Positions 236 to 26,449 of a DNA stretch of 32,000 nt are shown in pieces (the first letter of the stretch is position 1; each line of letters begins with the position of its first letter). Source of the stretch: Paramicrosporidium saccamoebae KSL3 (lineage: Eukaryota > Fungi > Cryptomycota); assembly GCA_002794465.1 (NCBI GenBank), contig MTSL01000072.1, forward strand, positions 1 through 32,000, written 5' to 3'. Below the pieces are notes generated by a model. That model was given only the letters and a program-made list of their open reading frames with translations. It ran no database searches and had not been told where the DNA came from. The position numbers were made by a program, and so were the translations under genes.

Positions 236-1200
236 ATGAGCGGCAGTCCCCACCAACAGCCCTACCACCAACCTCACCAACAGCCCCACCAGCAGCAACA
301 ACAACAGTACCAACAGTCCCAGTACCAGCAACAGTACCAGCAGCCTCAGTACCAACAGTCTCAGCACCAACAGCCGTCTCAGTCCAGTCCATATGCCCAG
401 CCGCCGCAATCCTATCAGGCTGCAGAAACTGACTTTTTAAAGGGCGTCTTGCCCAACCCTCAGCTTGGTCTGCAGATTGGGACACAAATGATCAATGTCG
501 GCCAGGATTATGTCCACAAGAATGTACATGTGCTGGAATGCTCATTCTGTAGATCTCTCCATACATTCCATATGGCGCCCTGAAGACGTACTTTAATGTC
601 ACAAACTTGTATGTTCTGCAAAAGCTGACTATTATTCTGTTCCCGTTCCGGCACAAGGCGTGGCAGCGGAGTGTATTGCGGGACCCGTCCGGACAGACAA
701 TGGGCTTTGTTCCTCCACGTCAAGACATTAACTCGCCCGACCTGTACATCCCCACCATGGCGGCTGTGACCTATGTCCTGCTAGTGGGATTTGTTCTGGG
801 CTTGCGCAAGTCTTTCCATCCAGAACAGCTCGGCATCACCGCCACGGGGGCGGTTATTTTCATTTTCTGCGAATTGCTGCTGGTAAAGCTTGGGGCATAC
901 CTGCTGAGTCTTGGCAATGACGTGACAATCCTCGACATGCTTGCCATCATTGGCTATAATTTTGTTCCCCTGATCGTGACATTGTTGGCCGATCTCTTCC
1001 TTGGACGGACCTTTAAGTATATTGCCTTTACCTACTGCAGCTTGGCGATGGCATTTTTCATGCTGCGCAGTCTGCGGTACTCCTTCCTCCCCGAGTCCAG
1101 TGCCGCCCCGTTGGTGATCAACCAGCGTCGGACAAGAGTGCATTTCCTCTTTGGGATTGTCGCAGTGCAGATCCTCTGCTCCTACTTCCTCCTAGTGTAA
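236..1200 (+). CDS. YIF1: YIF1/HRF1-family ER-Golgi membrane protein, 311 aa, 2 exons
   Basis: A 29-nt intron at 524-552 joins the ORFs in frame (DYVHKN|ISPYIPYGALKTYFNVTNLYVLQKL..LFPF). Also has the DINSPDLYIP motif, a Q/Y-rich N-terminus and several TM segments. Confidence 0.92.
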
Positions 1201-1341
1201 TAAACTATAGTATAAATGGGACGGGTATTTATTCAAAATGCCTAATCATTCCAATCCGGTTTGGTCATCGTAGTCGGGTTGTATAGTCATCGCATTCAAG
1301 AGATAGTTGTCACATTTAAAAGGTAACCATAATTGAATTGT

Positions 1342-1509
1342 TTAGTCCTCGTGGGTCTTTAGGGCTTCGGCATTGGCACCGACTCTGATGCGCGGATTGG
1401 CGTTCGAGCGAGGTGCAGCGGCACGGACCGCAAACTTTTCATCGTCGCTCATCAAGAAGACGATAGCAAGCACAGTAAAAAAGGTGGTGATGCGTTGAAG
1501 TCCAAACAT
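1342..1509 (-). CDS. Putative 55-aa small secreted or membrane peptide (below the ORF-track cutoff)
   Basis: MFGLQRITTFFTVLAIVFLMSDDEKFAVRAAAPRSNANPRIRVGANAEALKTHED*. Hydrophobic N-terminus, minus-strand AATAAA at 1228-1233 and upstream CCAAT at 1600 and 1624. Confidence 0.45.
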   Translation of the reverse strand: MFGLQRITTFFTVLAIVFLMSDDEKFAVRAAAPRSNANPRIRVGANAEALKTHED

Positions 1510-1695
1510 TGGAAATTTGTGGATGATAGCTTTGCGCCTATACAGATTTATAGTTTAGCTGAAACTGGTAGCGAATCCGAGACGGGCTTCAGACAATGTC
1601 CAATCAGAAAACACAATTTGCAGCCAATCAGCTAGCAAATTCTGGCAAATTCGGAATGGGCGTTTTTATAGGCTGACGTTGACAACATTAGGATT

Positions 1696-2091
1696 ATGCT
1701 CACCATGTCCCATCCTGTCAATACTGGGCTATGGCGAAGAAAGAGGAGTAGGCCACCTTCAGAGCTAGGAGAAGAATGGGATACCATCGAAGAGCTAAAA
1801 AGACTCAAGCTCCACGACGCTCTGCCCGTCAGTGTGCGCAAGGAGCCATCTAGCTCGCAGGCTCTGATTCCCCTTCCTGTGGCCCCCTCGAAAGAAACTT
1901 TCAAGATGGCTATATCTGTAGATTTTCCCGAAACCTCCCTGGGACGACTTTTTCGTCAAGCCGACGCCAATTCCCAGGCGGAGGAATCATCAGCCTCCGG
2001 GAAGGAACTTGTCGTATATCAACCAACTCCATTATCCGAGCTACTGAAGCAAGCCGCCTACCTCGACGAGCATCAGATGCTACTAGATTAG
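1696..2091 (+). CDS. Hypothetical 131-aa protein with basic NLS-like patches
   Basis: ATG-initiated ORF filling the intergenic gap. Contains RRKRSRP and KRLKL. No family recognised. Confidence 0.6.
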   Translation: MLTMSHPVNTGLWRRKRSRPPSELGEEWDTIEELKRLKLHDALPVSVRKEPSSSQALIPLPVAPSKETFKMAISVDFPETSLGRLFRQADANSQAEESSASGKELVVYQPTPLSELLKQAAYLDEHQMLLD

Positions 2092-2156
2092 ACATTTTCT
2101 AAGCAATACATACGTGTCCGCTTTATTCTCATTGGCTTAGCTCTTCTGTGCGTACA

Positions 2157-2990
2157 ATGATGGACAAACTGCGGGATACGTCGCAACACGCCGAAGTTGT
2201 CCTCAACAACCTTGCCGCGCCCCTCAAGCCCTATCTCTCCCACATTGGGCGTTTCCTCCTCGTCGTTACCTTTTTGGAGGACGCCCTGCGTATTTTCATG
2301 CAGTGGTCAGAGCAGGTTCGTTTCATGGAATACTACCGCAACTTTCCCCGTTCTCTGGCACACATTTTTCTCTTCTATAATGTTACCATGATGTTAACTG
2401 GCTCTGTGATGGGTCTAGCGCGTTTCAAGACGCCGGTGGCCTGTGGATTGCTAGCCTCTGTCGTCGTGGCCCAGACTCTTGGTTACGGACTGCTCTTCCA
2501 TCCAAGTTTCATGCTCCGTAACTTTTCTCTCATCGGTGGGATTCTTCTACTTCTCGCAGAATCATTTACAAGTGACGGAAAGCGCGGTCGAGCGGTCCTC
2601 TTCCCCGGCTTGCCCAATATCACCGAGACAGAAAAGAGTACTTATGTTTCCCTCTTTGGGCGGATCCTTCTGATTTTGCTGTTTGGTGCGCTCGGTTTAC
2701 AGGGCACCTTTTCTCCCATGAAAAAAGTATTTGCAGTCCTGGCGTGCATCTCTTGTATGATGGTGGCCGTTGGATTCAAGGCGCGCTATTCGGCCATGTT
2801 CCTGGTGGCCATCTTGTCAGTAGCTAACATTGTCATCAATCCGTGGTGGTCCTACGGCACGGACAGTGCAGAACGTGACTTTTTGCGCTACGACTTTTTC
2901 CAAATGTTGTCCATCATGGGTGGATTCCTCTTGCTAGCCAACTCTGGTCCCGGTGAACTGAGTCTTGATGAGAAGAAAAAGTCCTACTAA
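2157..2990 (+). CDS. ERV29: ERV29/SURF4 COPII cargo receptor
   Basis: GRFLLVVTFLEDALRI and YDFFQMLSIMGG..GPGELSLDEKKKSY motifs, multiple TM segments and a di-lysine tail. Confidence 0.95.
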   Translation: MMDKLRDTSQHAEVVLNNLAAPLKPYLSHIGRFLLVVTFLEDALRIFMQWSEQVRFMEYYRNFPRSLAHIFLFYNVTMMLTGSVMGLARFKTPVACGLLASVVVAQTLGYGLLFHPSFMLRNFSLIGGILLLLAESFTSDGKRGRAVLFPGLPNITETEKSTYVSLFGRILLILLFGALGLQGTFSPMKKVFAVLACISCMMVAVGFKARYSAMFLVAILSVANIVINPWWSYGTDSAERDFLRYDFFQMLSIMGGFLLLANSGPGELSLDEKKKSY

Positions 2991-3045
2991 GTCTCTAAGC
3001 TAAATAAACCCTGTCCATTGACTGAGAGATTACAAGAGCTTCCTA

Positions 3046-3150
3046 GATGAATAAGGTTGTGAAATGATACATGATTACGAACCAGCGAGATGGATAAAGT
3101 TGTGAAATGACACGGGATTACGGATCAGCGAGATGGATAGTTGTAAAGTG
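3046..3150. repeat. Imperfect 43-bp tandem repeat, 2 full copies plus a partial third
   Basis: gatgaataaggttgtgaaatgatacatgattacgaaccagcga (3046-3088), gatggataaagttgtgaaatgacacgggattacggatcagcga (3089-3131), then gatggatagttgtaaagtg. Confidence 0.85.
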
Positions 3151-3222
3151 GTATAGAATCACTGATTACCAAAAAACGCGCAGTGACTATAGGATAACAT
3201 TTATTTGTCTCACAGAAGCAGC

Positions 3223-3744
3223 TTAGAACTTCATGGTGTGGGGAGCCTGACCCTTCTGAAGAGTAAAGAGAGACTTTAGGTACGAACGCATGTTGGGGAC
3301 CTTCTTGATGTGAGTCAGCAGCAGGCTATCAACCTCGCTCTGGATCTTCTTGCGCTCAGCACTGACCTCCTTCTTTTGCTCCTCACCTTCGAACATTCCC
3401 TTCTTGGCCTTCTTGCACTTTTTGAAGAGAGTCTCGGAAAATTCAGGGACCTTGACTCCCGAAATGTCCACCTTTGTGGAGGTAGCCAGCACATATGACT
3501 GGTTGACACGCTTCAGCGGCACACCGTTAACCTTCATAGGTCCAGAGACCAACAGCAGACCAGAGGCGAGCTGCTTAAGGAACACGACGCGACGACCGCG
3601 GAAACGTCCAGCGAGCAAAATAAGGACGGTACCGGGTGTGATGGAAGCACGAAGTTTGGCAGTCTTCGCGGAGCGCTTGGGGGCCGCTACGGGGGCGTCA
3701 TGGAGCTCGACGTTACGGGGAGCAGGTGCAGTCTTTGCGGCCAT
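3223..3744 (-). CDS. RPL6: 60S ribosomal protein L6 (eL6), 173 aa, with a probable 37-nt 5'UTR intron (3745-3781)
   Basis: LRASITPGTVLILLAGRFRGRRVVFLKQL..GP..NGVPL.RVNQ.YV.ATST and YLKSLFTLQKGQAPHTMKF. The upstream gtacccac...ttaacccctag ends exactly at the ATG. Confidence 0.96.
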   Translation of the reverse strand: MAAKTAPAPRNVELHDAPVAAPKRSAKTAKLRASITPGTVLILLAGRFRGRRVVFLKQLASGLLLVSGPMKVNGVPLKRVNQSYVLATSTKVDISGVKVPEFSETLFKKCKKAKKGMFEGEEQKKEVSAERKKIQSEVDSLLLTHIKKVPNMRSYLKSLFTLQKGQAPHTMKF

Positions 3745-4203
3745 CTAGGGGTTAATGGATGGATGGGAGATGGGTGGGTACCTTTATATGTCACTGACTA
3801 CCAAGGTCAAGCCAGGGTTCCCGAGGTCCATTTCCTAGCATTGCATCTATTGTTAGATGGCAGAACAATACCTCAAGATCCTTGATTCTAGCAGTCGATT
3901 ACAAGAATCAGGCCGATACACTAAAATATCCAAGTGTTGAGCGCAAGAGCTGCTCCTCGGTAATGGGGGGGGAGACAATCGCATATTCGTTAATTATTGT
4001 GCATATATGTATGGCTTCAAGCTGTGTAGGCTTGCAAGGTGTTATCAATATGGCAATACTAGCAGCTACACACGATATCATTATAATTATAATACAAGTC
4101 GACTAATTCCATTGGCCGACGACTAGAGTTATGGAAGTTTCTAGACCCTTGATCCTGGAGGAGCCATTTAAGCCTCATTTCCGGGGAGGGCAGCCAATAT
4201 TAC

Positions 4204-4825
4204 ATGACTACTGAATCTCCGTATACCTGTATTGGGTGACTCTAATACGTATAGAATTGTACGAGCTCCCCGTGTCCTTTGGGCACAACGCAAGGACGTT
4301 CTGTACCTTACAATCGAAATCGTCGAGGCCAAGGACGACTCGCTCACCATCACTGAGAAATCTCTAGCTTTTTCGGCCTCTGAGGGCAGCAGTGGAAACA
4401 AATACTCGGTCAGCTTTGACTTTTACGACCTCGTTAATGCAGAGTCCGTAGAGCAGCACAAGACGGACCGTCACATTAGTCTGGTGGTGAAGAAGGTAGA
4501 TGAGGAAAAGCCATACTGGCCACGGCTGGTAAAGGTTGGAAAGCCGCATTTTGTGCACACCGATTTTAGTCGCTGGAAAGATGAGGATGAAGAGGACGAA
4601 GAGGAGCCTGGAATGGGTGGAATGAGTGGAATGGGCGGAATGGGCGACATGGATTTTAGCCAGTTTGCCAGTATGGCTGGAAACGGTGGCTTTCCCAACA
4701 TGATGGGAGGACAAAACTTTGATGAGGAGGATAGTGACGAGGAGGAGACTGGCAAAGATAATACTGACGAAGAGGATCCGTATCAAAAGACCAGCAAGGC
4801 CACCTTAGTTGAGGACGATGAATAA
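4204..4825 (+). CDS. SBA1: Hsp90 co-chaperone p23 (CS domain plus acidic/GM tail), 195 aa
   Basis: A 34-nt intron at 4221-4254 gives MTTESPIVRAPRVLWAQR. Has YWPRL..K.HFVHTDFSRWKDEDE and GGMGGM repeats. Confidence 0.93.
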
Positions 4826-4935
4826 GATACTTTAATTACACGCATTCTGTCTCCATAAATGGTTGTAGTCTCAAACTGATATTTGCGATAACAAGGGCGA
4901 ATAATTAGGGAAATTGCGGCCAGCCCATGGTGACA

Positions 4936-5630
4936 ATGGATGACGCACCCGACGAGTCTGCCTTGGTAGGCACCTTTGGAGTACGTCTCGGCGACTCGAT
5001 CACTAGCAAACAAGCCAAGAGCTCCTTTCATTCTTTCCGGTGTACTGCACACATACTAGAGTGACGGTGTAGATAACTTTGCACCCGACTCGGCAGACAA
5101 GTCAAAGGGTAACCTGATAGTCAGCGGGTCCGGTGAGACCTCGCTATCGTTGGCTAGCACCACCAAGGTATCTTTCACGCCATTTGTAAGTTTGCGGCAC
5201 ATGGGCCCATAGTCTGCACACTTGCAGCCAGCCCATGGCCCACAAAGAACGGAAGCAACAGGACGTGCCGGTATATTTTTTGCCGGATGCGTAGTATTTC
5301 TTCCTACATCTACCCTTTCCTTAGATACTATATTATAACTTGCAGGATATCGACGAGCATTTGTTCAAGGGGCCACAGACAAAGTGCAAGGAGAATGACT
5401 ATTTGTTAGTGTTTGATCCTGACACTCGTGAATTTGTATTGGAGAAGCATTCTAGCTCATTTGCACTAAGGAACATTCGTCCCACTAAGCGGAGGAAGCC
5501 GGAATCAGGAGAAGATGACACACCAACTGCGGGACGAATCCTGATGCCCGTTGCACGGGCCGTGGAGGATGATGGAGACGAATTTTCAGATCTGGAGAGT
5601 GACCTGCTTCGTGACTTGGAAAAGTCCTAA
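4936..5630 (+). CDS. ELL-associated factor (EAF) family elongation factor, 161 aa, 3 exons
   Basis: Introns at 5042-5072 (31 nt) and 5168-5345 (178 nt) give ...FHSFRYNFAPDS...LFKGPQTKCKENDYLLVFDPDTREFVLEKHSS, the EAF domain pattern. The spliced length is divisible by 3. Confidence 0.8.
5196..5311 (+). ncRNA. Candidate intronic box H/ACA snoRNA
   Basis: Hairpin (5196-5240), H box AAAGAA (5244-5249), second hairpin (5251-5304) and ACA (5306-5308), all inside the only 178-nt intron. Confidence 0.65.
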
Positions 5631-5750
5631 ATTTTGCATCCATTGTATAATAATAAAGAACATTCATTCTGTTGCAGCGTAGCGTGCATTGCAGCCGCGT
5701 ATTGATGGGGGCTGTCCGGGGTGGCCGAGCTTTATAGAGGACCCGGTTCC

Positions 5751-6318
5751 ATGAAGTACACTATCCATCCATTTAATTCAGTACAAAACGCAGTATCTGG
5801 TGCTGCCATTCCATTTTCCATTACAAAATAGATACTAACCTGCGTCTAGAACTGAAGTTTGCAACTTTTCCGGCGCCAAGATCTACCCGGGCCACGGAAA
5901 GCTCTTTGTCCGCGGCGACAGCAAGGCCTTCCGCCTGATTAACCGCAAGTGCGAGTCCCCCTTCCTTAGCAAGAAGAACCCGCGCAAGTATCACTGGACC
6001 GTCTTCTTCCGTCGCCTGCACAAGAAGGGCACCGCCGAAGAGGTCGCCAAGAAGCGCGTCCGCAAGACTGTCAAGGTGCAGCGTGCCATTGTTGGTGCTA
6101 GCTGGGAGCAGATTGTGGCACAGCGTGAGCAGCCTTTGGCTGTACGCAAGGCCACTAGGGATGCGGCCACGGATGCGGCCAAGGATAAGAAGAAGCAGGA
6201 GCAGGCCAAGAAGAGAGCCGAGAAGGTCAAGGCAGTTGGATCAGCCCAACGCCAACAGCCCAAGTTCAAGGCGTCCAAGAACGCCCCCGCTTCTCGTCCT
6301 TCTGCCACCAGTCGTTAA
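5751..6318 (+). CDS. RPL24: 60S ribosomal protein L24 (eL24), 157 aa
   Basis: A 94-nt intron at 5756-5849 with TACTAAC gives [27 protein letters not shown]...KNPRK..WT..FRRLHKKG. Confidence 0.96.
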
Positions 6319-6387
6319 GTCGTGGTTGTCAGTTCAATAAATGTTTGATCATACAACGGCAGTGTTTACATTTGATTGGCCGCCCAC

Positions 6388-7405
6388 ATGTACCGCTGGA
6401 ATATAAGACGGATATCCACAAAAGCGGTGCGGTTAGTGGAAGTGGGTCCGCGCGATGGACTACAGAACGAACCTAACACGGCTGCACTGACCACCAAGGT
6501 CAAGGCCGAGTTTATCCGCCGTCTGGCGAATAGTGGACTCCGTTGGATTGAGGCCGGGAGTTTTGTTTCCCCCAAGTGGGTTCCCCAGATGGCCGATACA
6601 GAAGCCGTCCTGGAGACCTTGGCCAAAGATCCTGAAATAGCCAAGATGAGCAGTCTCCGTCTGCCCGTACTGGTGCCCAATATGACTGGCTTGGAGACGG
6701 CTCTGTCATCCGGATTGTCGACAGTGTTGAAAGAAGTGGCAGTATTTACAGCAGCCAGCGACACTTTCAATAAGAAGAATACCAATTGCACAGTAGAGGA
6801 ATCTCTGAAGCGACTGGCTGAGGTGTGCAAGACTGCCACGGATAAAGGACTGATGGTCCGCGGGTACGTGTCAACAGTGGTTGGATGTCCGTATGAAGGC
6901 CAGATTGCGCCTGAGAAGGTCAGAGATGTGACCCTGGAGCTGCTCAGACTGGGATGCTATGAAGTTTCCCTCGGGGACACAATTGGAGTAGGCACAGCAG
7001 GTAATTTGGACCGGTGAGTAATGGATAGGCAGTGTGAGGGAGATGCTCAAGACTGTGCTGACCAGCGTGGATCCTTCCAAACTGGCCGTCCACTTCCACG
7101 ACACTTACGGACAGGCACTTGCCAACATTCTCGTTGCTCTGGAGGTACATTGATGTTGACACTGAGATGTTTAGAGCGGAATCCGGACGATTGATTCGTC
7201 AGTCGCTGGCCTGGGTGGATGTCCTTACGCCCCGGGAGCCAGTGGAAATGTCGCCACCGAGGACGTTGTTTACATGTTACATGGACTGCAATACTTTACG
7301 GGCGTCGACCTGGCCAAGCTTGTGGCGGCGGGGGAGTTTATCACAGCCAAGTTGGGTCAGACAAATCGTTCCCGGACTGCAAATGCTCTGCTCACCAAGA
7401 AATAA
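6388..7405 (+). CDS. HMGCL: Hydroxymethylglutaryl-CoA lyase, probably mitochondrial, 319 aa, 3 exons
   Basis: [33 protein letters not shown] and [19 protein letters not shown] after removing introns 7001-7028 and 7145-7174. Confidence 0.95.
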
Positions 7406-7406
7406 T

Positions 7407-8065
7407 TTATTTCTCAGATAAAAGCTCCTTGGTGATGCGTTTCATAGCGGCCAGCTCAGCCTCAGTAGCTTTGCCGCTGGCCTTCCAGCGCACCTGCGCG
7501 TGACGATCGATCAAATAAACATATGCGCCGAGGTAATTGGGCACAGTCAGCGTGTCTAGCAGCTGCATTGGCCGATAGGCAACTATAAAACTGTTTTGTA
7601 TGGATTCGGGGAGGGTGGCCAGGGCGGTAGAGCGGAGTAGGCGTGAGAATAACAGCCATTTAATACGACTCATCAACGGTCTCACGTCTATTAGCCGACC
7701 TCCCGCCTCCAGAAAGGGACGTCGAAAACTTTCGAGATGCGGCTCAGAGTATGCGGTGAAGCAGATGGTCAACAGGGTAACATGTCCCATGCAATGTCCA
7801 CGAAGTGACAATTCGTTACCAGTAATTGTTGTTGGCGTCCACTCAGGAAGAGCAATGGGGGTAATGACATTCTGGGATGCGGAAAAGAATTTTCCTTGCG
7901 ACTTCAAAATGTCGCTAATTTCCGCGACGGGACTTTTTGCCATGTCGCGAGCACTATCGGTTAGCCGATGCAGTGGGGATACAGACGCATCTTGCGCTGT
8001 TTATGCGCCTCGGCACTAAAAAGGGTGTGTCTTATGCGCGCCCACCAGGACGGTTTAGCAAGCAT
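7407..8065 (-). CDS. ATP10: Mitochondrial ATP synthase F0 assembly factor, about 209 aa
   Basis: C-terminal GAYVYLIDRHAQVRWKASGKATEAE. A 29-nt intron at 7954-7982 (ctaac branch) extends the frame to MLAKPSWWARIRH. The start codon is tentative. Confidence 0.8.
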
Positions 8066-8649
8066 GACTGGCTAGCACACTTTCGTGCGAGAGGGAGAGC
8101 AAGTATATCTACAGACCAGGGACTGAGAAGGCATAGCGATGGATCACAACCCCAATAAAGAGTCGTTACCACAAACGCGACCCTTACAAGCGTCTAATTT
8201 TTCAAATAAAACTGTAGTGATTATAAATCTGATATTTCTCAACCTATGTTCATCTTATTAATTCCAGGAACAACTCGAGAATCTCAAGTACTTGCAGTCA
8301 TCCCTCACGCTTCCCCGTGACGCTTGCAGTATTAGAAATAAAATCATGTTCTCCTAATCCCAAAATGCTAATGAAAGCGCGTATTCATTAATTCTACAGT
8401 ATCTTAGATTGAGAGTGATCCGACCTTACTGCATTGTCAACCTTACCATTCGTGGCTTCAGACTTGTCGTCTGTCGCTTTCTTATTGGTTATTTAACATT
8501 AATCTTCTGGTGGCTTATAAAAGCGGATTGGGTGCTTCGAGTGTAGGGTTACAAACCGATAAGCCCAACATGAAACATCAAGGCGAGATCGAGATAACCA
8601 AAGTTCCGAACGTAGTACAGCCCAACATCAAGGAATTTGGTAACACACA

Positions 8650-9631
8650 ATGAAGAATAACTCTGACGTCGTGCTAGGCTGTGAACTTTCAGACAAAGAA
8701 AGGTTGCATTACGAGTTTGTAAACGAAATGAGTCTTGCCTTCGAGTTCAGCGATCTTAAAGACAAGGGCAGAGAAACGATGGGCGCCCTTGAACATCTTG
8801 AAGAACTAGTGTTCGGAAAGAGTATAGGAAGCACTAGACATCCAATGGCGCGTATGGAGGTTCTTTGGGAACACTTTAAGGATGTTACATTTCAGCCGAG
8901 AATAAGGTATCCAATTTGAACTATTCTAATAGAGTAGACCACGCGATGGTATGTTCATTACTGTGGACTTTGCCCCAGGCTGGGGATCAGGGACAGCTGT
9001 TCGATGTGGTCAATTGCCCGATTCACCATTTTCCGAAGATGATATCCCAAATATGATTGTTGAAGAAGTCGCCTACATTACTGGAATCCAACTCTCCACC
9101 GATGAGATTTATTTTAAGCATAGCATACGCGTCAAACAGTCCTATGAAGACTACGAAGGACCTTTGGAGTTTTTTCGAGACGGTGGGATCATGGGATGGG
9201 GATACCTGCCCAAGACACGGACAGTTCCCGGCTTACGCTGGAGAGTACACATTTCGCAGATTTCACATGAAATTAGCGCAGCATTTCAACGTATCAAGAT
9301 GTTTAAAGAAGGCTATCTAACAGCTGAAGAGCGATTCACAAGGTGGGGAATTGTAATGCATATTTCGTCAAGAGTTCAAGAGCTTCAGGGTGATTACTCC
9401 GATCGCCCAAGCGAGTGGAAACATGTTCTTCTCATCCTTGACACGTGCGAGGAGGACATTCAGGCCATGTTAAATTTCACTAACAGGATGAATTTGCTTA
9501 ATCCGGTTCACGATCTCATCCCTATCCGGGTTCTTGAAGTAATCACTGTGTTCCGGGTACTATTTCGAGTGTCTCTGCGACAATTCGAGCTGGCCTATGA
9601 TGACTATGTACAAAGAGAACGTCGCTTATAA
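8650..9631 (+). CDS. Orphan protein A, 316 aa, 2 exons (paralog of 10776-11744)
   Basis: A 31-nt phase-2 intron at 8907-8937 joins ORFs 8650 and 8951. Clear similarity to orphan B. Confidence 0.75.
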
Positions 9632-9791
9632 TAGAATCACAAGTAGTGTAGAGCAATACCGTAACCATTTATTGCCAGAAGAATTTTTCACCGACAATGT
9701 ATAGCGAATAAACCACAAACAGTTTCATCAGAGCGTAATCTTCTCAAGTTAGACGTGGATCAGCAATTATAAAGAGACACGATAGACGCGT

Positions 9792-10253
9792 ATGTTGGAC
9801 AAAACGTTATGCAACGCCGCGTAGGTTACAGCACATGTCGAGTCGTTTAGGTACACGGATCCTGGACGCTCCCTGCATTTCTCTCAGAGCATCAGGGAAG
9901 CAAGTGATGTCGACTACTCAGAAGACATTAGCATTATCGGGCTTCAGCACGGGCTGGTTGTCACAAGGCCCGCAACGATGCCGGACGGGCCCTTGGAGGC
10001 TATGCTCCTAGTGGGTGAGAAGGCCGGCTTATTTCTCGAGAGGAGCAGGACGACACCGGAGCTTTTTTCCAGAGTCCTTGGAGTCCAGGACGACAGCCAC
10101 TCTCGACACATCATTAGACTACTCCAGAGGAGCAGGAACAAGCTAGCCCACCCGGATCCCCTTAGAATTATTGAGAGAGGAACTGATCTTAGCCTGGTCC
10201 CCCAAGGATACGAGGGTTACGCAAATCTACTTATTAAATGGGACTCATCATGA
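9792..10253 (+). CDS. Orphan protein C, about 143 aa (3' end uncertain)
   Basis: The frame is open from 9825 to 10253. A 30-nt intron at 9821-9850 links it to an ATG at 9792. A second possible intron (10216-10265) would end at TAA 10342-10344, just before AATAAA at 10351. Confidence 0.45.
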
Positions 10254-10775
10254 ATTGATGTCCAGAAGCGGCAAGGCCAAAGAGTCTGGCCAACGTTTGT
10301 GGAAGTCACAAACACATCGCCTCCATTTTGAGAATCTTAGTGTAATCTTTAATAAAGTGTTAGTTTAGGACTTTGTGTTATGGGACATAAACTGTGCTTG
10401 TAGACATCGCCAATCCCGAGATGGTTAGTGTGATAGCCAGGTGAAGATACCAAGATGGAAGGAAATAATTAAACAGAAGTGTAAGCCTGTTGACTTTATC
10501 ATTTAATATAACATTGTAGTACCTTTTTTATTCAGAGAGCACGGTTACCAACAGGCCGGCCTGAGGTATTTAAAATTGTAGCCAAAGAACGCTGATCCTC
10601 GATTGTGTGGGATGTGGGCACCTGTTTACAGCCCGATTGGATGAACACAAGACAAATGAGCACATAGTTTGGATGCCGTGGGCATCCATCTGCAAGTCAA
10701 TTGGATAAGCATCCGACGATTAGTCGCATTTGAAGAGACGCTGTTCAGCTCACCGTTGAAGACGTCGGTCACACA

Positions 10776-11744
10776 ATGAAGAGAGACTTTGACACTGCAA
10801 TAGGCCCTGAGATTCCAACCCCAACCACAATAAAAGAAGAACTTGAACGAGATGCCTGGAATCCCTTTGAAGCCGACCCAAGTGTTCCTGGAGAAGAAGA
10901 GGGCATTGTTAGTTGCCTTGAGAGAAGTATCCTCGGGATTACCCAAAGGGGTGCCATTTCTTTGACGGCTCGAATGGACAGGCTGTTAAAACCGTTTAAG
11001 GATTACGTACCCGAGTCAATGTACGCGCAGCTGATTTATTGTACTTAATAGTGTAGGGTGAAAGGCGGAATGTTTGTCACCACGTGCTACATCCCTGAAG
11101 ACGGGTCAAAACGGCTCGGATACGGCAGGCTGCCAGATGAGCCATTCAGTAAAGGAGACCTTTTGCCCATGCTCGTCAAAGATCTCGGCCGCATTACTGG
11201 CATTGGAGTCAGAGGTAGAGATATGTGCAGGGGACGGGATATCCTGCCCCAAATCAAATACGAAGATCGTGAAGGGCTGCGTAAGTACTTTGTGGAAGGT
11301 AGCGCAGTGTGGAGTAGGTATGATCCCTATGCAGACATACCGGGAGGATATTGGAGGCCGCACGTTCCCTTGACATCACACGAGATCACTGCCGTCGGCC
11401 AGCGTATGGATAGATTTAATAGAAACTATCTCACAGCAAAGGAACGTCTCACGCGATGGGGACTCGTACTGCTGATCTCGTCCAAAATTCAAGCCTTTAA
11501 AGATGGTTACTCTGGCTGTCCCGAACAATGGGAACACGCCATTAGCGTTCTCGATGTTCATGAGAAAGACATACGGGCTACGCTGGATTTTACTAACGGG
11601 ATGCACACCCTCGATCCCGTTCATGACCTTATTCCTATTCGGGTCCTGGAGGTGATTTCAGTGTTCCGGACAATGTTCCGAATTTCTTTACGACAGTTCG
11701 AGCTGGCATGTGGTAGACTTGGGTGTAATGCCTCCATCTCCTGA
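10776..11744 (+). CDS. Orphan protein B, 310 aa, 2 exons (paralog of 8650-9631)
   Basis: A 36-nt phase-2 intron at 11021-11056 lies at the same position as in A. The start context cacacaATGAAGA is shared with A, and AATAAA follows at 11787. Confidence 0.75.
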
Positions 11745-11998
11745 CGACACGATCAACAAGGCAGAAAGTACTGGTGTGAGGTTGCTAATAAATGTCCTTT
11801 AGTAAAATTTCTGGTCCATAGTTGATTGTGAAGCCAAGAAGTCTAAAATGTGGAATCAAGATTACATAACAGGGTGTCGAGAGTCTGCAGAGTACATCTG
11901 CACTCACAAACTGACCGCCACGTAGTTTGTGGACGCAAATCGATAGACATGATACAGTCATTGTTATTAAATATCTAGACTTTTTATAGCTTCCCAAT

Positions 11999-13552
11999 TT
12001 ATCCGTCGACAATACTGATGGCATAGAGACTGAAGGCCGCCACTACACCAGTTATAGTCACAATTCGACTGAAATCATCAGCCCAGTCAAACTTTACGAG
12101 CACCAATTCTTCTCGGATGTAGTCAAAAAAGCTTGATGTGGCTAGGATTTGGCCAAAGTGGTGGTCAGGATCAAAGAGGTTCACTTTTGCCGTATGTAGT
12201 ATGGGATCTGCTCTATTGGTGTGTAAAAATACGGTGGCCCACAATCTAGTGCTGGCGCGTCCGGAAAAGATTTCTTCATTAGACCACCTTTCAGCAGATC
12301 TATACAGTTCGACAGACTCTTCAGCGAGACAGAGCACAGTAGTACACGTGACGGTGGGGAAATTAATGGGGTAAGGCAATTTTGTGAAAGCGGGGATAGC
12401 ATGCTTAAGATCGCCATCATAGTCGTTCCAGAAAGTTTCCGCCTCATTAATGGTGCTTATGGATAATGGCCAGACGATTCCGGCAAAATTTTGATGCAGA
12501 AAAGTGCCCCACTGCTTGGCAGCCTGCAAAAGTCCGCCATAGATACTGGCTGATGAAGGGACAGATGCTTGCGCATGTACCAGACTCGTTGCATAGTCAC
12601 TGGTGGGGTTCGTGTCACAATTTACTTTGTTGAGGGCCAAAATCTTCACTATCCCCTCTAGATACAAGGGAGGAATCAGTTCTACACCGTAGGCAGCCAG
12701 CAACCATTTCAACATTACGGCCGCGCGCTTTTTGACCGAGTCATTTAGAAAATTTACGTTTGGTAAAGACAGAATGCTGTAGACAAGACGGGCATGCCAA
12801 AACGCCAGCATCGCCGGTTTGCCGGAGAAGCGCTTATAAAGTATCAAGTACAGATTCTTATGGGCGGATATAGGATCTCTCCCAAACACAAGCTCGATTC
12901 TCGTTGCAAACTTTCCATTTCCATAATACTTTGTTGCATTTGCCTTTGTGAGTTTTTCGGTAGAACCATCATGGGAAGACGGGTCCAAAAGCGATATGAT
13001 GGCGAGTTCTCGGTTGTCCATGTGCGGAAGATCATTCCACGTATCCGTTGCATTCCAATAGAAATCCGAGTTACCCGGGATGGATATTTTTCCGATGCGA
13101 GATTTCAGCATTGAAGGCTGGTGAATTAACATTTCGAATAGCCTGTTCCGAAAGTTATTAGAAAACTTTTCGAATTGACTCTCATCATACTCGATGTAAC
13201 GAGGCGTATAATCATCCCATCTCTTCTCAATCAGCTCCAAAAGCTCTGGCTCACGAGCAACGAAAGAAAGCGGAAACAGAAGGGGATGGAGACTTTTGGC
13301 ATTAAAGTAGCTCCAGACCAATGCTGATGCATCCTTTAACGATATTGAGCGGGCATAAAAATCCTCCTTGACTGAGAATGGGTCGATAGTGTTCAAAATT
13401 TCTGGAAGAGCAGCCACTGTTTTGTGGTCTGTAAGGTCAAGATTCTGCATAGCCTCTATCCGACCTTGAGTCCCAAGGGCGTAATACTCGGCCATGTTGA
13501 GAATACTTTGCAGCCCAGAGACCACAGGGAATAGAGCGCTAGCAAGCAGCAT
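11999..13552 (-). CDS. Orphan protein D, 517 aa, predicted secreted and C-terminally anchored
   Basis: Long intronless ORF with a signal-peptide-like MLLASALFPVVSG, N-glycosylation sequons (NAT x2, NDS) and a hydrophobic end IVTITGVVAAFSLYAISIVDG. Confidence 0.7.
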   Translation of the reverse strand: MLLASALFPVVSGLQSILNMAEYYALGTQGRIEAMQNLDLTDHKTVAALPEILNTIDPFSVKEDFYARSISLKDASALVWSYFNAKSLHPLLFPLSFVAREPELLELIEKRWDDYTPRYIEYDESQFEKFSNNFRNRLFEMLIHQPSMLKSRIGKISIPGNSDFYWNATDTWNDLPHMDNRELAIISLLDPSSHDGSTEKLTKANATKYYGNGKFATRIELVFGRDPISAHKNLYLILYKRFSGKPAMLAFWHARLVYSILSLPNVNFLNDSVKKRAAVMLKWLLAAYGVELIPPLYLEGIVKILALNKVNCDTNPTSDYATSLVHAQASVPSSASIYGGLLQAAKQWGTFLHQNFAGIVWPLSISTINEAETFWNDYDGDLKHAIPAFTKLPYPINFPTVTCTTVLCLAEESVELYRSAERWSNEEIFSGRASTRLWATVFLHTNRADPILHTAKVNLFDPDHHFGQILATSSFFDYIREELVLVKFDWADDFSRIVTITGVVAAFSLYAISIVDG

Positions 13553-13739
13553 CCTTGGCTGAGATGAAAGTACCCGAAAATGGGGACCGGGGCCAATGAT
13601 CTTACAGTATAAAGTCGGGGTTGCTAATAAAGGCTATGGAAATCGCTGATCTGCAGGCATGCATCTCACACTAGCAGCTTTGAATTTTGGTAACACTTAA
13701 AAAACTCCTTTCCTGGCTTACATTCTGCATTTATTATGA

Positions 13740-15209
13740 CTAGAGCTGCTGCTTGGGCCAGGAATATTCCAGACCGTGTCGGAGAAATCCCAGCTCCTTT
13801 AGCCGTTCATCGGCGGCTGCAGGACCCCGCGATCCGTAGGGATACTCGGCGGGGATGGAATGACGCTCTTCAATCTCTTTCAAAAGCGGAGTGAAAATGC
13901 GCCAGGCATTCTGTAGCTCATCGGCACGCACAAAATTGGACCGGTCGCCTCGCAAGGCGTCCAGGATGAGTGCTTCATAAGCCTCGGGGATGTGTAGACC
14001 GACGTACCGGTCGGCATAGGACAGATCCAGATCGCTGACAATGGGCTGCGAGTCAAATCCGGGCCGTTTGACCATCAATTTCATGTAAACAGCCTCATTT
14101 GGTTGCACACGAATGACCAACTCGTTGCGAGCGGCATTTGGGAAAAGACAGCCGGGGACATTGGTGAATTGGATCCGAATCTCTGCCTTTTGCTCGTTCA
14201 GCGCCTTACCGCAGCGCAACACAAAAGGCACGCCTGACCAGCGCTCATTCTCTACAAACAGTGTGGCCATGGCAAAGGTGGGGGTATTCGAGTTGGACGG
14301 GATAGTCTCATCGTCCAAATATCCTGCATGGCTCCCATCTGCGCTGCCCCGGTACTGTCCCAAAATGACCTCGTCCCTGTGCAGGGGACGGATGCATCGG
14401 AGCACTTTAACCTTTTCGTTTCGTACGTCCTCGGCGTCCAAAGTAGCGGGTCGCTCCATTGCCACCACTGTCAGCATCTGCAGCAAATGGTTCTGCATCA
14501 CGTCCCGAATGATCCCGAATTCGTCAAAGTAGCCACCCCGTCCCTCCACGCCCAGCGTCTCTTTGAAGACGATCTGCACATTTGCTATACAGTCTCGGTT
14601 CCAGACAGCGTTAAAAAAGAGATTGCTGAAGCGGATGGTCATAATGTTCTTTACCATCTCCTTCCCCAAGTAGTGATCGATCCGATATAACTCGTCTTCT
14701 TGGAATAGCGGCGCCAGAGCCTGGGAAAGGGCGTTGGATGATTCAAGATCCCGGCCAAACGGCTTCTCCACAATCAATCGGTTCTGATAGCGGTCATTAT
14801 ACAAAACCGACTTGATCTGGGTTGCAACCTCAGTGAAAACGGATGGTGGCAGGGCCAAGTAGAAGAGACGGACATGATCATACTCGTGTCCCGTGTCCTC
14901 AGTCGGGAGCGCCTCAATCTTCTCCTTTAGGGCCACATAGCCGCTTGGGGAATTATATGATCCCGAAATGTATTCGCACCGTCCCAGGAATCGGCCCAGT
15001 AGCTCCTGGTCGCCTTGGGTAATGGCGTGTTTCTTCAGAAAGGGCATCAGCTTGGCATTCAGTTCCTCCTGGGTTAGTTCTGAACGTGCATATCCAAAAA
15101 TGCGGAAATCCTCTGGAAGATATTTCCGGCGATAGAGAGCAAAAAGGGCCGGATAGGTTTTGCGACGAGCCAGGTCGCCAGAGGCTCCAAAGACGACGAC
15201 GACTAACAT
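13740..15209 (-). CDS. ZWF1: Glucose-6-phosphate 1-dehydrogenase
   Basis: GASGDLARRKTYPAL, EKPFG, RIDHYLGKEMV, RGGYFDEFGIIRDVMQNHL and RWSGVPFVLRCGKAL. Confidence 0.98.
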   Translation of the reverse strand: MLVVVVFGASGDLARRKTYPALFALYRRKYLPEDFRIFGYARSELTQEELNAKLMPFLKKHAITQGDQELLGRFLGRCEYISGSYNSPSGYVALKEKIEALPTEDTGHEYDHVRLFYLALPPSVFTEVATQIKSVLYNDRYQNRLIVEKPFGRDLESSNALSQALAPLFQEDELYRIDHYLGKEMVKNIMTIRFSNLFFNAVWNRDCIANVQIVFKETLGVEGRGGYFDEFGIIRDVMQNHLLQMLTVVAMERPATLDAEDVRNEKVKVLRCIRPLHRDEVILGQYRGSADGSHAGYLDDETIPSNSNTPTFAMATLFVENERWSGVPFVLRCGKALNEQKAEIRIQFTNVPGCLFPNAARNELVIRVQPNEAVYMKLMVKRPGFDSQPIVSDLDLSYADRYVGLHIPEAYEALILDALRGDRSNFVRADELQNAWRIFTPLLKEIEERHSIPAEYPYGSRGPAAADERLKELGFLRHGLEYSWPKQQL

Positions 15210-15408
15210 TCACAGAATTAAATTAAAAGGCTTATTTGTTTTTTAACCCTGTTTGCCTCTTCATTGTGTCCAGTATCCAACGAATCTATTGAGATGATAC
15301 ATTGCTCTGTGAAGGATCCATGATGGTCAGCAATGTCTTCCGTCTTGCAATGATTGGCTCAGTCAGTCAGTTTAACAATTTCTCGATAATTTTGATTAAG
15401 CAGCGTTA

Positions 15409-16467
15409 ATGCTGTCAGCTGAAGTGTCCTCCCCCCGACGAGGCACACGCAAAAGTGCCGAGTCTGGTAATGTCAGCGGCGAAGAGCTCTTCTCGCAGCC
15501 TCTCCAGGACACTATCCAGAGCGGGGAGGAGGACATTTACACCCAAGCCAGAACGCAGCTCGCCGAGGAGCTAAGCAGGACGACCAGCCGCTTCAATCCA
15601 CATCCCGACGAGGCCGAGGTGCGTGATGTACGTAGCGGCTATGCCAAGTTGTTGGGTGAGGTGCGCCAGCGCAAGGGAGACTTAATGCAGCCCGAGTCCA
15701 CCCGACTCCAGGATATGCTCCTCGATGCAAACCGTCTCATGAACCGAGTCCGCACCACAGCCGATGCCTCTCTCGATTCGCGATTCGTGGCCATGTCGGC
15801 AGACATTGGTGCCGAGAAGATTAACAAACTGGCAGCTGGGAGCATGGACTATAGTGTCAGTGATTTCAGCACCTTGGTGAAGATGGTGCTGACGCGACCA
15901 ACAGGAACTAATGTAGTGGGATTGGATGACAATGATAATGGCGAATCCTATGACTGGGCGTCGATAGGAGAGATAGCCGAACGACATTGGCAGGGCGTGA
16001 CTGCACCTGATTTCTTTTTGGGTCCTATAACGGTTGAACCAAAGGAAAAGAGACCACGAGCCAAATCAGTCAGAGAGCAAAAGACGGTTGAAGCTGTAGT
16101 GCAGCCAACTGTGCTCGGGGCGGCTGATGCAGGCAGTGCGGGCGGGTCCGAGACGGCGGAAAAGGTGCGGTTAGTGTATCGCGCCCTGGAAGCACTTCCG
16201 TCTCCCGTGCCATTTTACAAATTCATCATCCATCCGACGTCGTTTTCCCGAACTGTCGAGAATCTTTTCTACTTGTCGTTTCTGGCCAACGATAATCGGG
16301 TCAGATTGGAGTCATCAGACCGTGATGGACTTGTCATATACATTATAGAAGAGGACGAGGAGGACACGGCGAAACCAAAGTTCCAGCGGATATATCCAAT
16401 GACAATGGCATTGTGGAGGGAAAAGATTGCCGAGTATGCCATCAAGAGGCCGTTGCTGGATTTTTAA
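15409..16467 (+). CDS. NSE4: SMC5/6 kleisin subunit Nse4
   Basis: N-terminal DASLDSR motif and C-terminal FYKFIIHPTSFSRTVENLFYLSFL. Confidence 0.9.
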   Translation: MLSAEVSSPRRGTRKSAESGNVSGEELFSQPLQDTIQSGEEDIYTQARTQLAEELSRTTSRFNPHPDEAEVRDVRSGYAKLLGEVRQRKGDLMQPESTRLQDMLLDANRLMNRVRTTADASLDSRFVAMSADIGAEKINKLAAGSMDYSVSDFSTLVKMVLTRPTGTNVVGLDDNDNGESYDWASIGEIAERHWQGVTAPDFFLGPITVEPKEKRPRAKSVREQKTVEAVVQPTVLGAADAGSAGGSETAEKVRLVYRALEALPSPVPFYKFIIHPTSFSRTVENLFYLSFLANDNRVRLESSDRDGLVIYIIEEDEEDTAKPKFQRIYPMTMALWREKIAEYAIKRPLLDF

Positions 16468-16816
16468 AGTAAGTAATGGGCGATGATTAGAAAGAGGAAT
16501 TACAAAGGACATCCCAGGATGTTCTGATGCGTGTCGTCTCTCTACACTTGAGGATTAGCCAAATATGAGCCTAATATCTATTGTGTCAGCTGATTTGTAG
16601 GTTCTGTCTGTCGACACGATCGTCTATGCGTCAAATACGACCATGAGGGTCAGTCTGGAGTTGTAATGCCGTAACCTATCTCCCACGTTGGCATATTCAG
16701 CAGGCGGTTGCTAGCTCCCATTGTAGAACCATCTCGTTTAAAGTTTCAATATAAAACCATTTGCTCGCACCACAGGACCATCTCATTCAGGCATTCAATA
16801 CAGAACTGCTATAGAA

Positions 16817-18773
16817 CTACTTGTTTGGATTGCAGGATAGTCGCATTATGGATACAAAGGCGTCGTGGGGAATCTCCACCTTGCCAAACATTCTCATTCG
16901 GGCCTTTCCTTCCTTTTGGGCTTCTAGTAGTTTCATCTTTCTCGACTTGTCTCCGCCATACTACACACATCAAAACCATGTAATTGGGCCCTACACACTT
17001 GGCAATCACATCTTTGCGCACTGCAGAAATGTCTTCACGGGCGATCACTTTGGTGCCAATCACTGCCTGAACCGCAATCGGGAATTGCTGTCTCGGGAGG
17101 AGATTGGCCAGCTTTTTCACCCAACTCCTTCCTACCGGCTCTGCCCGAGACCGTGGCTGTACCGTGCTTAAAATATCCACCAAATCGCCATTCAAACGGA
17201 CGCCAATCTTGACGAGCTCCACGGATCGCATGCTCGCAGGTTCATAATCAAGACTGGCGTAGCCGGCCGAGATGGACAACAGACGGTCGTTAAAGTCGCC
17301 AATAATCTCGACTAGTGGCAGGTCGGCAGTCATTAACACACGATCGGTGGAAAGATATTCAATGGTCGTCTCACCACATCTCGATTCAGAGCACAGCTGT
17401 GAGATTGGCCCTATGTTGCTCACTGGAAAGATTAGTGTCGCTTTGACAAATGGCTCCCGAAACTCTCGGACATTGCAAAGCTCGGTAGTGCTGGGGTACT
17501 CTTCTGCCGACGAAATCTCCCGTGCTGAGCCATCTTTGAATATGGCCTCGTAGGATACATTAGGCGACGTTAGGATTACATTTACGCCAAACTCTTGCTC
17601 CAACCTTTGTGCAAATACATCCATGTGCAAGGATCCGAGAAATCCAAGTCTCCAGCCGGGTCCCAACGCCACCGATACAATCTTTTCGGCACTGACACTA
17701 GAGTCGTTCAAAAGGAGTTTGTCCACTGCAATTGAGACTTGATCATACTCTTCGCGTACCGCAGGGAACATTCCCGCAAACACAATAGGCCGTGCTTTGG
17801 TCGGAATGGTGATTTCTGTAGTATCAATCGCCTCAGCCGGGTCGTAAAAGGTATCACCAATCAAGGCGTCATGGGTGCTCTTCATTCCACATCGGATATA
17901 TCCGACCTGTCCGGCATGCAAATAGTCTGTTCTGACAAGCTCGGGCTGCAAGATCCCAACTTCATCAACCACAAAAACACGCTCATTTGCGGCACTCTTG
18001 ACCGAATCACCTGGTTTAATGGCTCCTCTCCTTACAATTATCATACACACCACTCCTCTGAATTCGCGGAACCAGCAATCGATCAAGGTTGCCTCAAACG
18101 TTCCCTCAACCACAGCCTCTGGTGGGGGTATCCTTTCAATGATTGCAGGTAGAATAGATTCCACATTCAAGCCCGTCTTTGCCGAGATGGCCAACACGGG
18201 CATATTAAAAACGTCCAATCCAAGCTGCTCTTCAAGTTGTTCCATAACCATTCCCACATCGGCCTGTGGCAGGTCCACTTTGTTAATCACCGGCACTACC
18301 GTTCTGCCGCGTGCCCTCAAGTAATGCGCCACAGTCTGTGCCTGCACACCTGTAGTCGCGTCTACTAGTAGCAGTACACCTTGCATTGCCCCCATCGATC
18401 TGCTCACTTCGTTACTAAAATCTGCATGTCCTGGCGTGTCAATTAGGTTCAGCAAGTGGCCAGAGTGGAAGAGGGAGGCTGCTTGGGCCTTGACGGTGAT
18501 CCCACGCGTCCGCTCCACCGGAAGTGTATCGAGAGTGGGGGTGGTAGACCGGAGGGTAAGACAGCCGGTGAGCTCGAGAAGACGGTCAGCCAACGTGCTC
18601 TTCCCATGGTCAATGTGTGCGATGATGCCAAAGTTGCGGATGCGAGAGGGTGGAATTTCTCTCATGCATGGAGGAGGCCCTACTCCCTCAAGATACTAGC
18701 AACATTACCCAACAAGCATGAATTCAACCTTAATGCTGGCGAATCCCCGCACTTGCCATTTCCGTCCCAGCAT
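16817..18773 (-). CDS. GUF1: Mitochondrial translation GTPase GUF1/LepA (EF4), 629 aa, 3 exons
   Basis: [23 protein letters not shown] and NKVD. Removing intron 16961-16994 restores [24 protein letters not shown]. Removing intron 18696-18728 adds a presequence, [13 protein letters not shown]. Confidence 0.95.
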
Positions 18774-18848
18774 AAATGTTAACATTTTTGTAAGATCTTA
18801 AGATGAGGGAAGGGTCTTGACTTTTAGGGTCAGTTTTATTGTACAATC

Positions 18849-19970: not shown

Positions 19971-20038
19971 TATCAATGCGGTCCGCCCAATCAAATTACA
20001 CCAATAACTGTGAAAATCACTATTTAGCTGTACAAGTT

Positions 20039-23879: not shown

Positions 23880-23966
23880 AACAGATTCCTAATAAGGAGT
23901 GTTTCATTAATTGTGAGAGTATATAAACAGCTACCTAATAAGGGGTGTTTCAGTAATTGTGAGTAT
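23880..23966. repeat. 46-bp imperfect direct repeat, 2 copies
   Basis: aacagattcctaataaggagtgtttcattaattgtgag... at 23880 and aacagctacctaataaggggtgtttcagtaattgtgag... at 23926. Confidence 0.85.
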
Positions 23967-24047
23967 TGTGTGCACTGTGTGTATTGTGTGTATTGTGAGT
24001 ATCGTGTATATCGTGTATATCGTACATGTCGTGTGTATCGTATGTAA
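23958..24047. repeat. 9-bp minisatellite, 10 degenerate units
   Basis: tgtgagtat tgtgtgcac tgtgtgtat tgtgtgtat tgtgagtat cgtgtatat cgtgtatat cgtacatgt cgtgtgtat cgtatgtaa. Confidence 0.9.
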
Positions 24048-24073
24048 CGGACCAGATTCAAGAAAATTTGGAT

Positions 24074-26416: not shown

Positions 26417-26425
26417 CTTAACAGT

Positions 26426-26443: not shown

Positions 26444-26449
26444 CTTGTC

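Follow-up and report, generated by a model that had tools for sequence, protein, structure and literature searches.

The window analysed here, the whole 32,000-nucleotide (nt) stretch from contig MTSL01000072.1 of Paramicrosporidium saccamoebae KSL3 (assembly GCA_002794465.1, positions 1–32,000 of the forward strand), is gene-dense eukaryotic DNA with ~49% G+C. The element under study lies in the second intron of a gene predicted to encode an RNA polymerase II elongation factor of the EAF family (Table 1). The spliced protein matches the Pfam EAF family (PF09816) with 59 bits against a gathering cut-off of 26 (E = 6.6e-16), and an initial annotation of this DNA had likewise described the host as a transcription-elongation gene. 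From the comparisons presented below, positions 5194–5311 very probably constitute a genuine intron-encoded box H/ACA RNA gene. Our overall reading, which we consider reasonably probable, is that this RNA is an H/ACA guide in EAF intron 2 that directs the formation of pseudouridine (Psi) at residue 6 of the U1 small nuclear RNA (snRNA).

The RNA is predicted to adopt the hairpin-hinge-hairpin-tail arrangement of its class, an architecture that is recovered both by RNAfold and by RNAalifold with covariation across lineages. In unguided RNAfold calculations, a 123-nt core folds with −43.9 kcal/mol, compared to −32.1 ± 3.3 kcal/mol for shuffled sequences (z = −3.6, with none of 200 shuffles as good), and the whole of intron 2 folds with −51.3 kcal/mol (z = −3.0). 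The lower stem of the 5′ hairpin consists of GGC/GCC, the bulged A5199 and CAUGGGC/GCCCAUG, and is followed by an internal loop with CCAUAGU on the 5′ side and CCA on the 3′ side. The hinge (5241–5250) contains ACAAAGAA, within which AAAGAA conforms to the ANANNA consensus of the H box. In the 3′ hairpin, the lower stem is GGAAG/CUUCC, A5287 is bulged from the upper stem, and a single nucleotide, U5305, precedes the ACA box. The apical loops are CACU and UAUUUUU. The upper stem is closed by the pair A5263–U5292, at the canonical catalytic distance of 14 nt upstream of ACA. Since the G–U pairs U5266–G5289 and G5267–U5288 would become C–A mismatches on the other strand, the RNA is assigned to the + strand, sense to its host gene.

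The initial annotation had proposed a box H/ACA RNA in intron 5168–5345, and all the motifs that it listed are found here exactly where it placed them: CATGGGC/GCCCATG (5200–5206/5231–5237) and CTGCA/TGCAG (5214–5218/5223–5227) in the first hairpin, the H box AAAGAA (5244–5249), and GGAAG/CTTCC (5251–5255/5300–5304), CCGGTA/TGCCGG (5268–5273/5281–5286) and ACA (5306–5308) in or after the second. The pairs that it drew in the upper stem of the second hairpin exist, but the stem is longer, as covariation indicates that ACGUG (5263–5267) pairs with UGCGU (5288–5292). As a consequence of this extension, the strands of the pocket are CAACAGG and AGUAUUU and the closing pair is the one located 14 nt before ACA.

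Relatives of this locus were sought among environmental and metagenome contigs, which are designated by L-numbers. The spliced EAF protein has one database relative, the JGI metagenome protein P0001, whose contigs, L001 and L002, match the window in gene order and, at ~93% identity, in sequence. Further relatives were found by a search with the neighbouring RPL24 protein followed by contig comparison. A homologous long EAF intron, in the same gene order, is present in L001/2, L003–5, L006, L007, L009, L011/12 and L013/14, and each copy bears the RNA; in six of the seven further lineages, the stems of both hairpins retain their pairing despite sequence change. The intron lies between the same residues (...ASTTK and DIDEHLFKG) in L001, L003, L007, L009, L011 and L014, as determined by tblastn, and its homologues are also long (~174–345 nt). 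Every homologous intron contains the same succession of a lower stem, ..ACAGG, an upper stem, AGUA.., the second strand of the lower stem, one nucleotide of any kind and ACA.

In a structure-blind MAFFT alignment of the 3′ hairpin from seven lineages (A2), no blocks other than ACAGG, AGUA and ACA are invariant, and AGUA is separated from ACA by exactly 13 nt in all seven. For the ten pairs that flank the pocket, 88.6% of the cells are paired, compared to 68.0 ± 3.4% in shuffled alignments (0/500), and 17 cells have changed on both sides of a pair, compared to 5.7 expected. Controls in which the 3′ partners were slid by 1–3 columns were 34–64% paired, and RNAalifold independently predicts the identical ten pairs. 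The closing pair of the upper stem (5263–5292) is A–U in four lineages and G–C in three, and the second pair (5264–5291) is C–G in six of the seven. For the 5′ hairpin, an alignment of five lineages (A3) was used, in which the L014 row is out of register and counts against the structure; a MAFFT alignment of four lineages (A4) was set aside, as its two arms were misaligned. The lower stem of this hairpin is 88% paired, compared to 71% when shuffled, with six pairs changed on both sides and slid controls at 26–50%. Conserved structure in relatives, the absence of which the initial annotation had counted against its proposal, is thus present in both hairpins, and conservation and covariation across up to seven lineages give strong support to the presence of a box H/ACA RNA in the intron.

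The limits of the RNA are also evident from conservation. Seven positions of the RNA are changed relative to L001, and four of these changes compensate for each other in two pairs (G5255A with C5300T, and C5268T with G5286A). The identity to L001 is 94.1% within 5194–5311, ~87% in the exons, 84.6% in the intron upstream of the RNA and 61.8% directly after ACAUCU. Such a profile of identities is characteristic of an H/ACA RNA that is trimmed and protected by proteins. The ACA box is invariant in all lineages and conservation ends 3 nt downstream of it, where the 3′ end is placed. At the other end, the initial GCGGCAC is kept as CGGCAC in L007 and L011.

Between lineages, the RNA varies in ways that help to define its functional part. 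In relatives, the 3′ pocket strand reads AGUAAAA, AGUAACU, AGUAAGU, AGUAAAU or AGUAUCU. The 5′ pocket strand is AACAGG in most lineages, UUUACAGG in L003, and has U at the equivalent of A5258 in L014. The H-box homologues in the hinge of the relatives are ACAAAA, ACAGUA, ACAUUA, AUAGCA and ACAAUA. An extra small hairpin is located between the H box and the 3′ hairpin in L007 (5066–5092), L009 (~2933–2962) and L011 (~2712–2730); this three-hairpin layout is missing in the window and L001. A divergent homologue is found in L013 (~2880–3030) and L014 (1010–1156), with pocket strands UAUCAGG and AGUG, the 3′ strand being interrupted by a mini-hairpin of 10 nt, GCCAUUAGGC. Its fold z-scores are weak (−0.7 and −1.5), and it keeps CAGG; this copy could be degenerating, or could represent a variant geometry. 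When the window and the related loci were searched with R1, a covariance model of the A2 alignment, no further copy was detected; the L013/L014 copy was missed by this model. A comparison with Rfam had been suggested by the initial annotation; in Rfam 15, whose curated H/ACA families include those of SCARNA18/U109, SCARNA16/ACA47 and the yeast snR RNAs, no family was matched at the gathering threshold in the window or at E <= 10 in 5100–5420, and the L007 and L009 homologues gave only chance-level matches to unrelated families.

We also considered the 5′ hairpin as a second guide and rejected it. Its 3′ pocket strand is just 2–3 nt (CCA), the loop bases at 5208 and 5210 differ even in the closest relative, and no pocket sequence is conserved. 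Thus, this hairpin is probably structural. A CAB box (ugAG) is absent from both apical loops, and no conserved AG motif is present in the loops of the relatives.

The invariant core of the 3′ pocket is exactly complementary, by Watson-Crick pairing, to nucleotides 2–5 and 8–11 of the universal 5′ end of U1 snRNA, leaving U6 unpaired. The 3′ strand is predicted to form A5293–U5, G5294–C4, U5295–A3 and A5296–U2, with U5297 pairing to A1 in the window, L001 and L003, and the 5′ strand to form G5262–C8, G5261–C9, A5260–U10 and C5259–G11. Both U6 and A7 of U1 would be left unpaired in the pocket. With the universal end AUACU-U-A-CCUG, there are 5+4 Watson-Crick pairs; with U1 genes that have U at position 12 (and 13), as in environmental U1 sequences, there would be up to 11, as the conserved AACAGG gains extra pairs if U1 reads ..CCUGUU. 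The guide positions that vary between lineages have as their counterparts either U1 residues from position 12 onward or no U1 residue at all, as they extend beyond its 5′ end. A U1 target would account for both: past AGUA(U), the 3′ strand has no substrate left to pair with and can vary, and the 5′ strand varies only opposite the part of U1 that differs among eukaryotes. By our own estimate, the chance of a perfect 9-nt match at one of the ~130 known pseudouridines of ribosomal RNA (rRNA) and snRNA is ~4^-9 x 130 = ~5e-4. Based on this complementarity, the target is probably U1 snRNA Psi6.

U1 genes with the extended complement do exist. A metagenome scan for ATACTTACCTGT...ATTGCAC recovered many U1 genes of the CCUGUU type, ten of which were confirmed by Rfam above the gathering score, several beginning AUACUUACCUGUUCG; Rfam-confirmed U1 genes reading AUACUUACCUGU(U) occur in environmental eukaryotes. 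The strand UAUCAGG of L013/L014 could wobble-pair with the commoner G12 of U1. Among the other snRNAs, real metagenome U2, U4 and U5 genes contain no such site, except for one all-wobble chance match in a single U2. If U1 Psi6 is the target, the U1 of these lineages is expected to begin AUACUUACCUG. A literature search with the string AUACUUACCUGU returned nothing useful. As a separate observation, clusters of U1, U5, U4 and U2 within 1–2 kb are found on the metagenome contigs L042, L129, L085, L098 and L019, which derive from environmental eukaryotes, where U1 begins AUACUUACCUGU and not the textbook ..CCUGG.

Several points weigh against this interpretation. The host lineage's U1 gene was not found in the window or in any related locus, and the environmental U1 genes with U12 are not assignable to the host lineage. 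U1 position 12 is G in most well-known U1 RNAs, which would be a mismatch with the invariant A5258. Nine base pairs are near the lower limit for H/ACA guiding, and pairing past nine is hypothetical. A lineage-specific rRNA site is still a candidate, as is likewise a lineage-specific site in an snRNA or another target. With regard to the class of the RNA, the positional homologue of the H box is ACAAAG in the window and ACAAUG in L003, both with a final G, and in the window the ANANNA consensus is matched only in a shifted register, by AAAGAA. Finally, the pocket lies within 14–16 nt of the ACA box in all seven aligned lineages, but not in the L013/L014 copy, where the distance from AGUG to ACA is 20 nt and outside this rule.

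As most H/ACA RNAs target rRNA, one alternative is a genuine intronic H/ACA small nucleolar RNA (snoRNA) that guides rRNA, either at a site GUGAAAUACCAC-U-AC in the large subunit (LSU) rRNA or at a lineage-specific site. The initial annotation had favoured an LSU target, GUGAAAUACCACUAC. We examined 120 eukaryotic rDNA loci that contaminate GTDB bacterial assemblies (592 kb, nine with complete units of small subunit (SSU), 5.8S and LSU rRNA); IMG/VR contributed one LSU fragment only. The LSU motif is real, as it occurs in 69 of the 120 loci, followed by CCUUUAU, UCCUAUU, UUUUAAC or similar, and it pairs with eight of the nine bases of GUAGUAUUU. However, this strand takes in G5291 and U5292, both of which belong to upper-stem pairs, so that the pairing would have to open 5263–5292, which covaries from A–U to G–C, and 5264–5291, which is C–G in six of the seven lineages. 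In addition, pairing on the downstream side of the candidate U extends over no more than 3 nt, and the 3′ pocket strands of the relatives are unable to pair with AAAUAC. The LSU target was rejected on these grounds. The initial annotation had also suggested scanning rRNA for complements of the pocket. The invariant core corresponds to the target pattern U-R-Y-U / U-N / Y-Y-U-G-U (wobble allowed), which has no match at conserved mature-rRNA positions in the 120 loci; allowing one mismatch gave the same outcome. The pattern has nine distinct matches in the 592 kb, approximately the number expected by chance, all singletons apart from one recurrent match, which lies in the spacer of a yeast-like repeat, ~1.2 kb upstream of 18S. 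Thus, we consider an rRNA target unlikely, whether at the LSU site or at a lineage-specific one.

The RNA might instead belong to the H/ACA class but lack a usual modification target; it could act as a chaperone in processing, guide an mRNA or some other non-coding RNA, or be an orphan. Precedents exist in orphan H/ACA RNAs and in non-modifying ones of the snR30/U17 type, the RNA is without a match in Rfam, and its U1 target is proposed from sequence complementarity. Nevertheless, conservation within the RNA is highest in the pocket strands and AGUA keeps a fixed spacing to ACA, at the catalytic distance, as would be expected for a modification guide, and the perfect 9-nt match, with the low chance probability given above, is centred on a universally conserved pseudouridine. 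We therefore regard an RNA of this kind as rather improbable. A more radical view is that the intron encodes no stable RNA, and harbors a cis-element, for example for regulation of EAF splicing, or bears a coincidental likeness to an H/ACA RNA. The RNA is predicted from sequence, and a consensus-like GTAAGT within intron 2 (5186–5191), positioned 18 nt past the true 5′ splice site, may point to alternative splicing. Its use would disrupt the frame. This GTAAGT is not conserved, as L001 reads GTAAAC. Moreover, two covarying hairpins, an H box, an invariant ACA at fixed spacing and a drop in conservation 3 nt past it, in up to seven lineages, together form a specific H/ACA signature that would be unexpected for a generic splicing element, and this explanation is very improbable.

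If the RNA does guide the modification of U1, its biogenesis and action may be pictured by analogy with known H/ACA RNAs, from which we infer its expression, processing and protein partners. The RNA would be co-transcribed, as the sense strand of intron 2, with the EAF pre-mRNA. The core of Cbf5/dyskerin, Nop10 and Nhp2 would bind co-transcriptionally, with Gar1 joining later, and exonucleolytic trimming of the spliced intron would free the protein-protected hairpin-H-hairpin-ACA core. In the pocket of the 3′ hairpin, AGUA(U) would pair with (A1)U2-A3-C4-U5 of U1, and (AA)CAGG with C8-C9-U10-G11, plus positions 12–13 where these are U. This would leave U6 and A7 without partners where the upper stem begins, 14 nt from ACA, so that Cbf5 could convert U6 to pseudouridine.

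Psi6 of U1 is conserved, and in human it is guided by the H/ACA RNA U109 (PMC7960923); the Drosophila pugU1-6 has been verified experimentally, by biochemical means, to make it (PMC3884663). The window RNA is similar to human U109 (SCARNA18) and pugU1-6 in class and predicted substrate position, and it is intron-encoded, as are most animal guide RNAs. It differs from them in having no CAB box, in its EAF host gene and in its occurrence in an early-diverging fungus, and some of its relatives contain a third small hairpin, unlike U109 and pugU1-6. No sequence or structure homology is detectable between them (no Rfam match at E <= 10). By analogy, the window RNA may be considered a functional analogue of U109 and pugU1-6, with no claim of common descent. 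Human ACA47 (SCARNA16), the guide for U1 Psi5, pairs with the same 5′-terminal segment of U1, but one nucleotide out of register relative to the pocket described here, which leaves U6, and not U5, unpaired; it also gives no Rfam match to the window RNA. Generic intronic H/ACA snoRNAs that guide rRNA share the hairpin-H-hairpin-ACA order, a pocket 14 nt from ACA and a sense orientation within the host intron. In contrast to these, the window RNA has no conserved rRNA complement and resides in the gene of a transcription-elongation factor that is not ribosome-related.

Among fungi, Saccharomyces cerevisiae snR81 is an H/ACA RNA that modifies U2 Psi42 via Cbf5 (PMC7960923), and thus, as proposed for the window RNA, a fungal H/ACA RNA acting on a spliceosomal snRNA, with a different target and an unrelated sequence. 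For U1 Psi5 and Psi6 of yeast, no guide is known and the mechanism has been described as unclear (PMC7960923). The conserved RNA described here, with a pocket that matches U1 Psi6, is a first candidate for a U1 Psi6 guide in fungi. We suggest, tentatively and as a possibility somewhat short of probable, that, within the fungal kingdom, this is the first guide RNA to be found for U1 Psi6, representing an H/ACA route in early-diverging fungi that co-evolves with U1 positions 12–14. Psi5 and Psi6 are located within the ten U1 nucleotides that recognise 5′ splice sites. The arrangement ..ACAGG, stem, AGUA, 9 nt, ACA provides a search template with which to ask whether other fungi, including model species, have or have lost such a guide. 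More generally, covariation across metagenome or SRA contigs that share gene order can validate a non-coding RNA where Rfam finds nothing. The animal homologues of EAF belong to the little elongation complex, which transcribes snRNA genes. It is a speculative thought that the location in EAF, if the proposed function is true, couples expression of the snRNA-transcription machinery to snRNA modification.

Table 1. Features of the EAF gene and of the predicted H/ACA RNA in its second intron (window coordinates).
Feature	Positions	Strand	Description
EAF-family host gene	4927–5630	+	167-aa protein after removal of two GT..AG introns
EAF exon 1	4927–5039	+	Spliced translation open; Pfam PF09816; exon conserved in L001/L002 (including by tblastn)
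EAF intron 1	5040–5061	+	22 nt, GT..AG; the frame requires removal of a length of 1 mod 3
EAF exon 2	5062–5167	+	Spliced frame, Pfam match, tblastn to relatives
EAF intron 2	5168–5345	+	178 nt, GTATCT...TTGCAG
EAF exon 3	5346–5630	+	Stop codon TAA at 5628–5630; 92% identical to JGI protein P0001
Predicted mature box H/ACA RNA	5194–5311	+	~118 nt; ends placed from the limits of conservation
5′ hairpin	5196–5240	+	10-bp GC-rich lower stem, bulged A5199, small internal loop, CUGCA/UGCAG upper stem; RNAfold
H box region	5242–5249	+	ACAAAG overlapping AAAGAA (fits ANANNA)
3′ hairpin with pseudouridylation pocket	5251–5304	+	Lower stem 5251–5255/5300–5304, upper stem 5263–5273/5281–5292; RNAfold, RNAalifold, covariation
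5′ pocket strand CAACAGG	5256–5262	+	ACAGG invariant in seven lineages; predicted partner U1 C8-C9-U10-G11 onward
3′ pocket strand AGUAUUU	5293–5299	+	AGUA invariant; predicted partner U1 (A1)U2-A3-C4-U5
ACA box	5306–5308	+	Invariant; 3-nt tail UCU to the presumed 3′ end at 5311
TTATAAC, branch-site-like	5333–5339	+	Inside block ATATTATAAC conserved with L001; just 5′ of the 3′ splice site

The conserved TTATAAC near the end of intron 2 presumably acts as its branch site. Intron 1, GTGTACTGCACACATACTAGAG, is identical at 20 of 22 positions in the closest relative, L001, and its homologue is ~39–42 nt in L003 and L007; 22 nt is unusually short for a fungal spliceosomal intron. The initial annotation had put intron 2 at about six times the local norm; besides intron 2, the introns placed in the window are this one and a 94-nt intron of RPL24 (5756–5849). 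The latter has a canonical TACTAAC branch site, and no C/D or H/ACA motifs were seen in it. The first exon of the RPL24 gene (5751–6226) is ATGAA only, so that the start codon is separated from the rest of the coding sequence.

The gene order around EAF is conserved. The block SURF4, RPL6e, CS/p23, EAF, RPL24, HMGL, ATP10, G6PD, Nse4 and LepA occurs in at least seven further environmental lineages, whose RPL24 is 70–96% identical to that of the window. Over ~600–20000 of the window, an extended block that includes YIF1 is collinear in L003, L006, L007, L009, L011, L013, L260 and L261; protein identity within the block is 60–96% across environmental contigs, and L260 and L261 also carry CDC45. 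This collinearity suggests a clade with compact genomes. The distant contigs L260 and L261, anchored by G6PD, end short of the EAF gene and have no intron to compare. The nearest named RPL24 and G6PD sequences are from chytrids, Basidiobolus, Glomeromycotina, Mortierellomycotina, Zoopagomycota and aphelids, with identities of 55–66%. Since these are all early-diverging fungi and the identities are low, the host would belong to a deep-branching fungal lineage, a placement that reflects similarity ranks and not a phylogeny. The adjacency of EAF and RPL24 was not found in two named chytrids, Quaeritorhiza and Gaertneriomyces, which also lack the collinear block, and so no homologue of the RNA was obtained there.

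A few minor observations were made in the course of these comparisons. At least 120 species-representative assemblies labelled as bacterial or as metagenome-assembled genomes (L138–L257) contain eukaryote-type LSU rRNA, several with complete 18S-5.8S-28S units, and yeast-like rDNA is present in Planomonospora, Cellulomonas and Ornithinimicrobium assemblies. The eukaryote-type rRNA in these bacterial assemblies is contamination. Among the best G6PD matches (E = 3.8e-210) is a 751-aa protein, P0130, in an assembly of the pitcher plant Sarracenia purpurea; this could mean that DNA of a related organism has contaminated the plant assembly, or that the gene model is a fusion. Elsewhere in the window, imperfect short tandem repeats rich in GTGT, GTAT and CGTGTATAT (23959–24060) are located upstream of a large minus-strand open reading frame (24074–26455).

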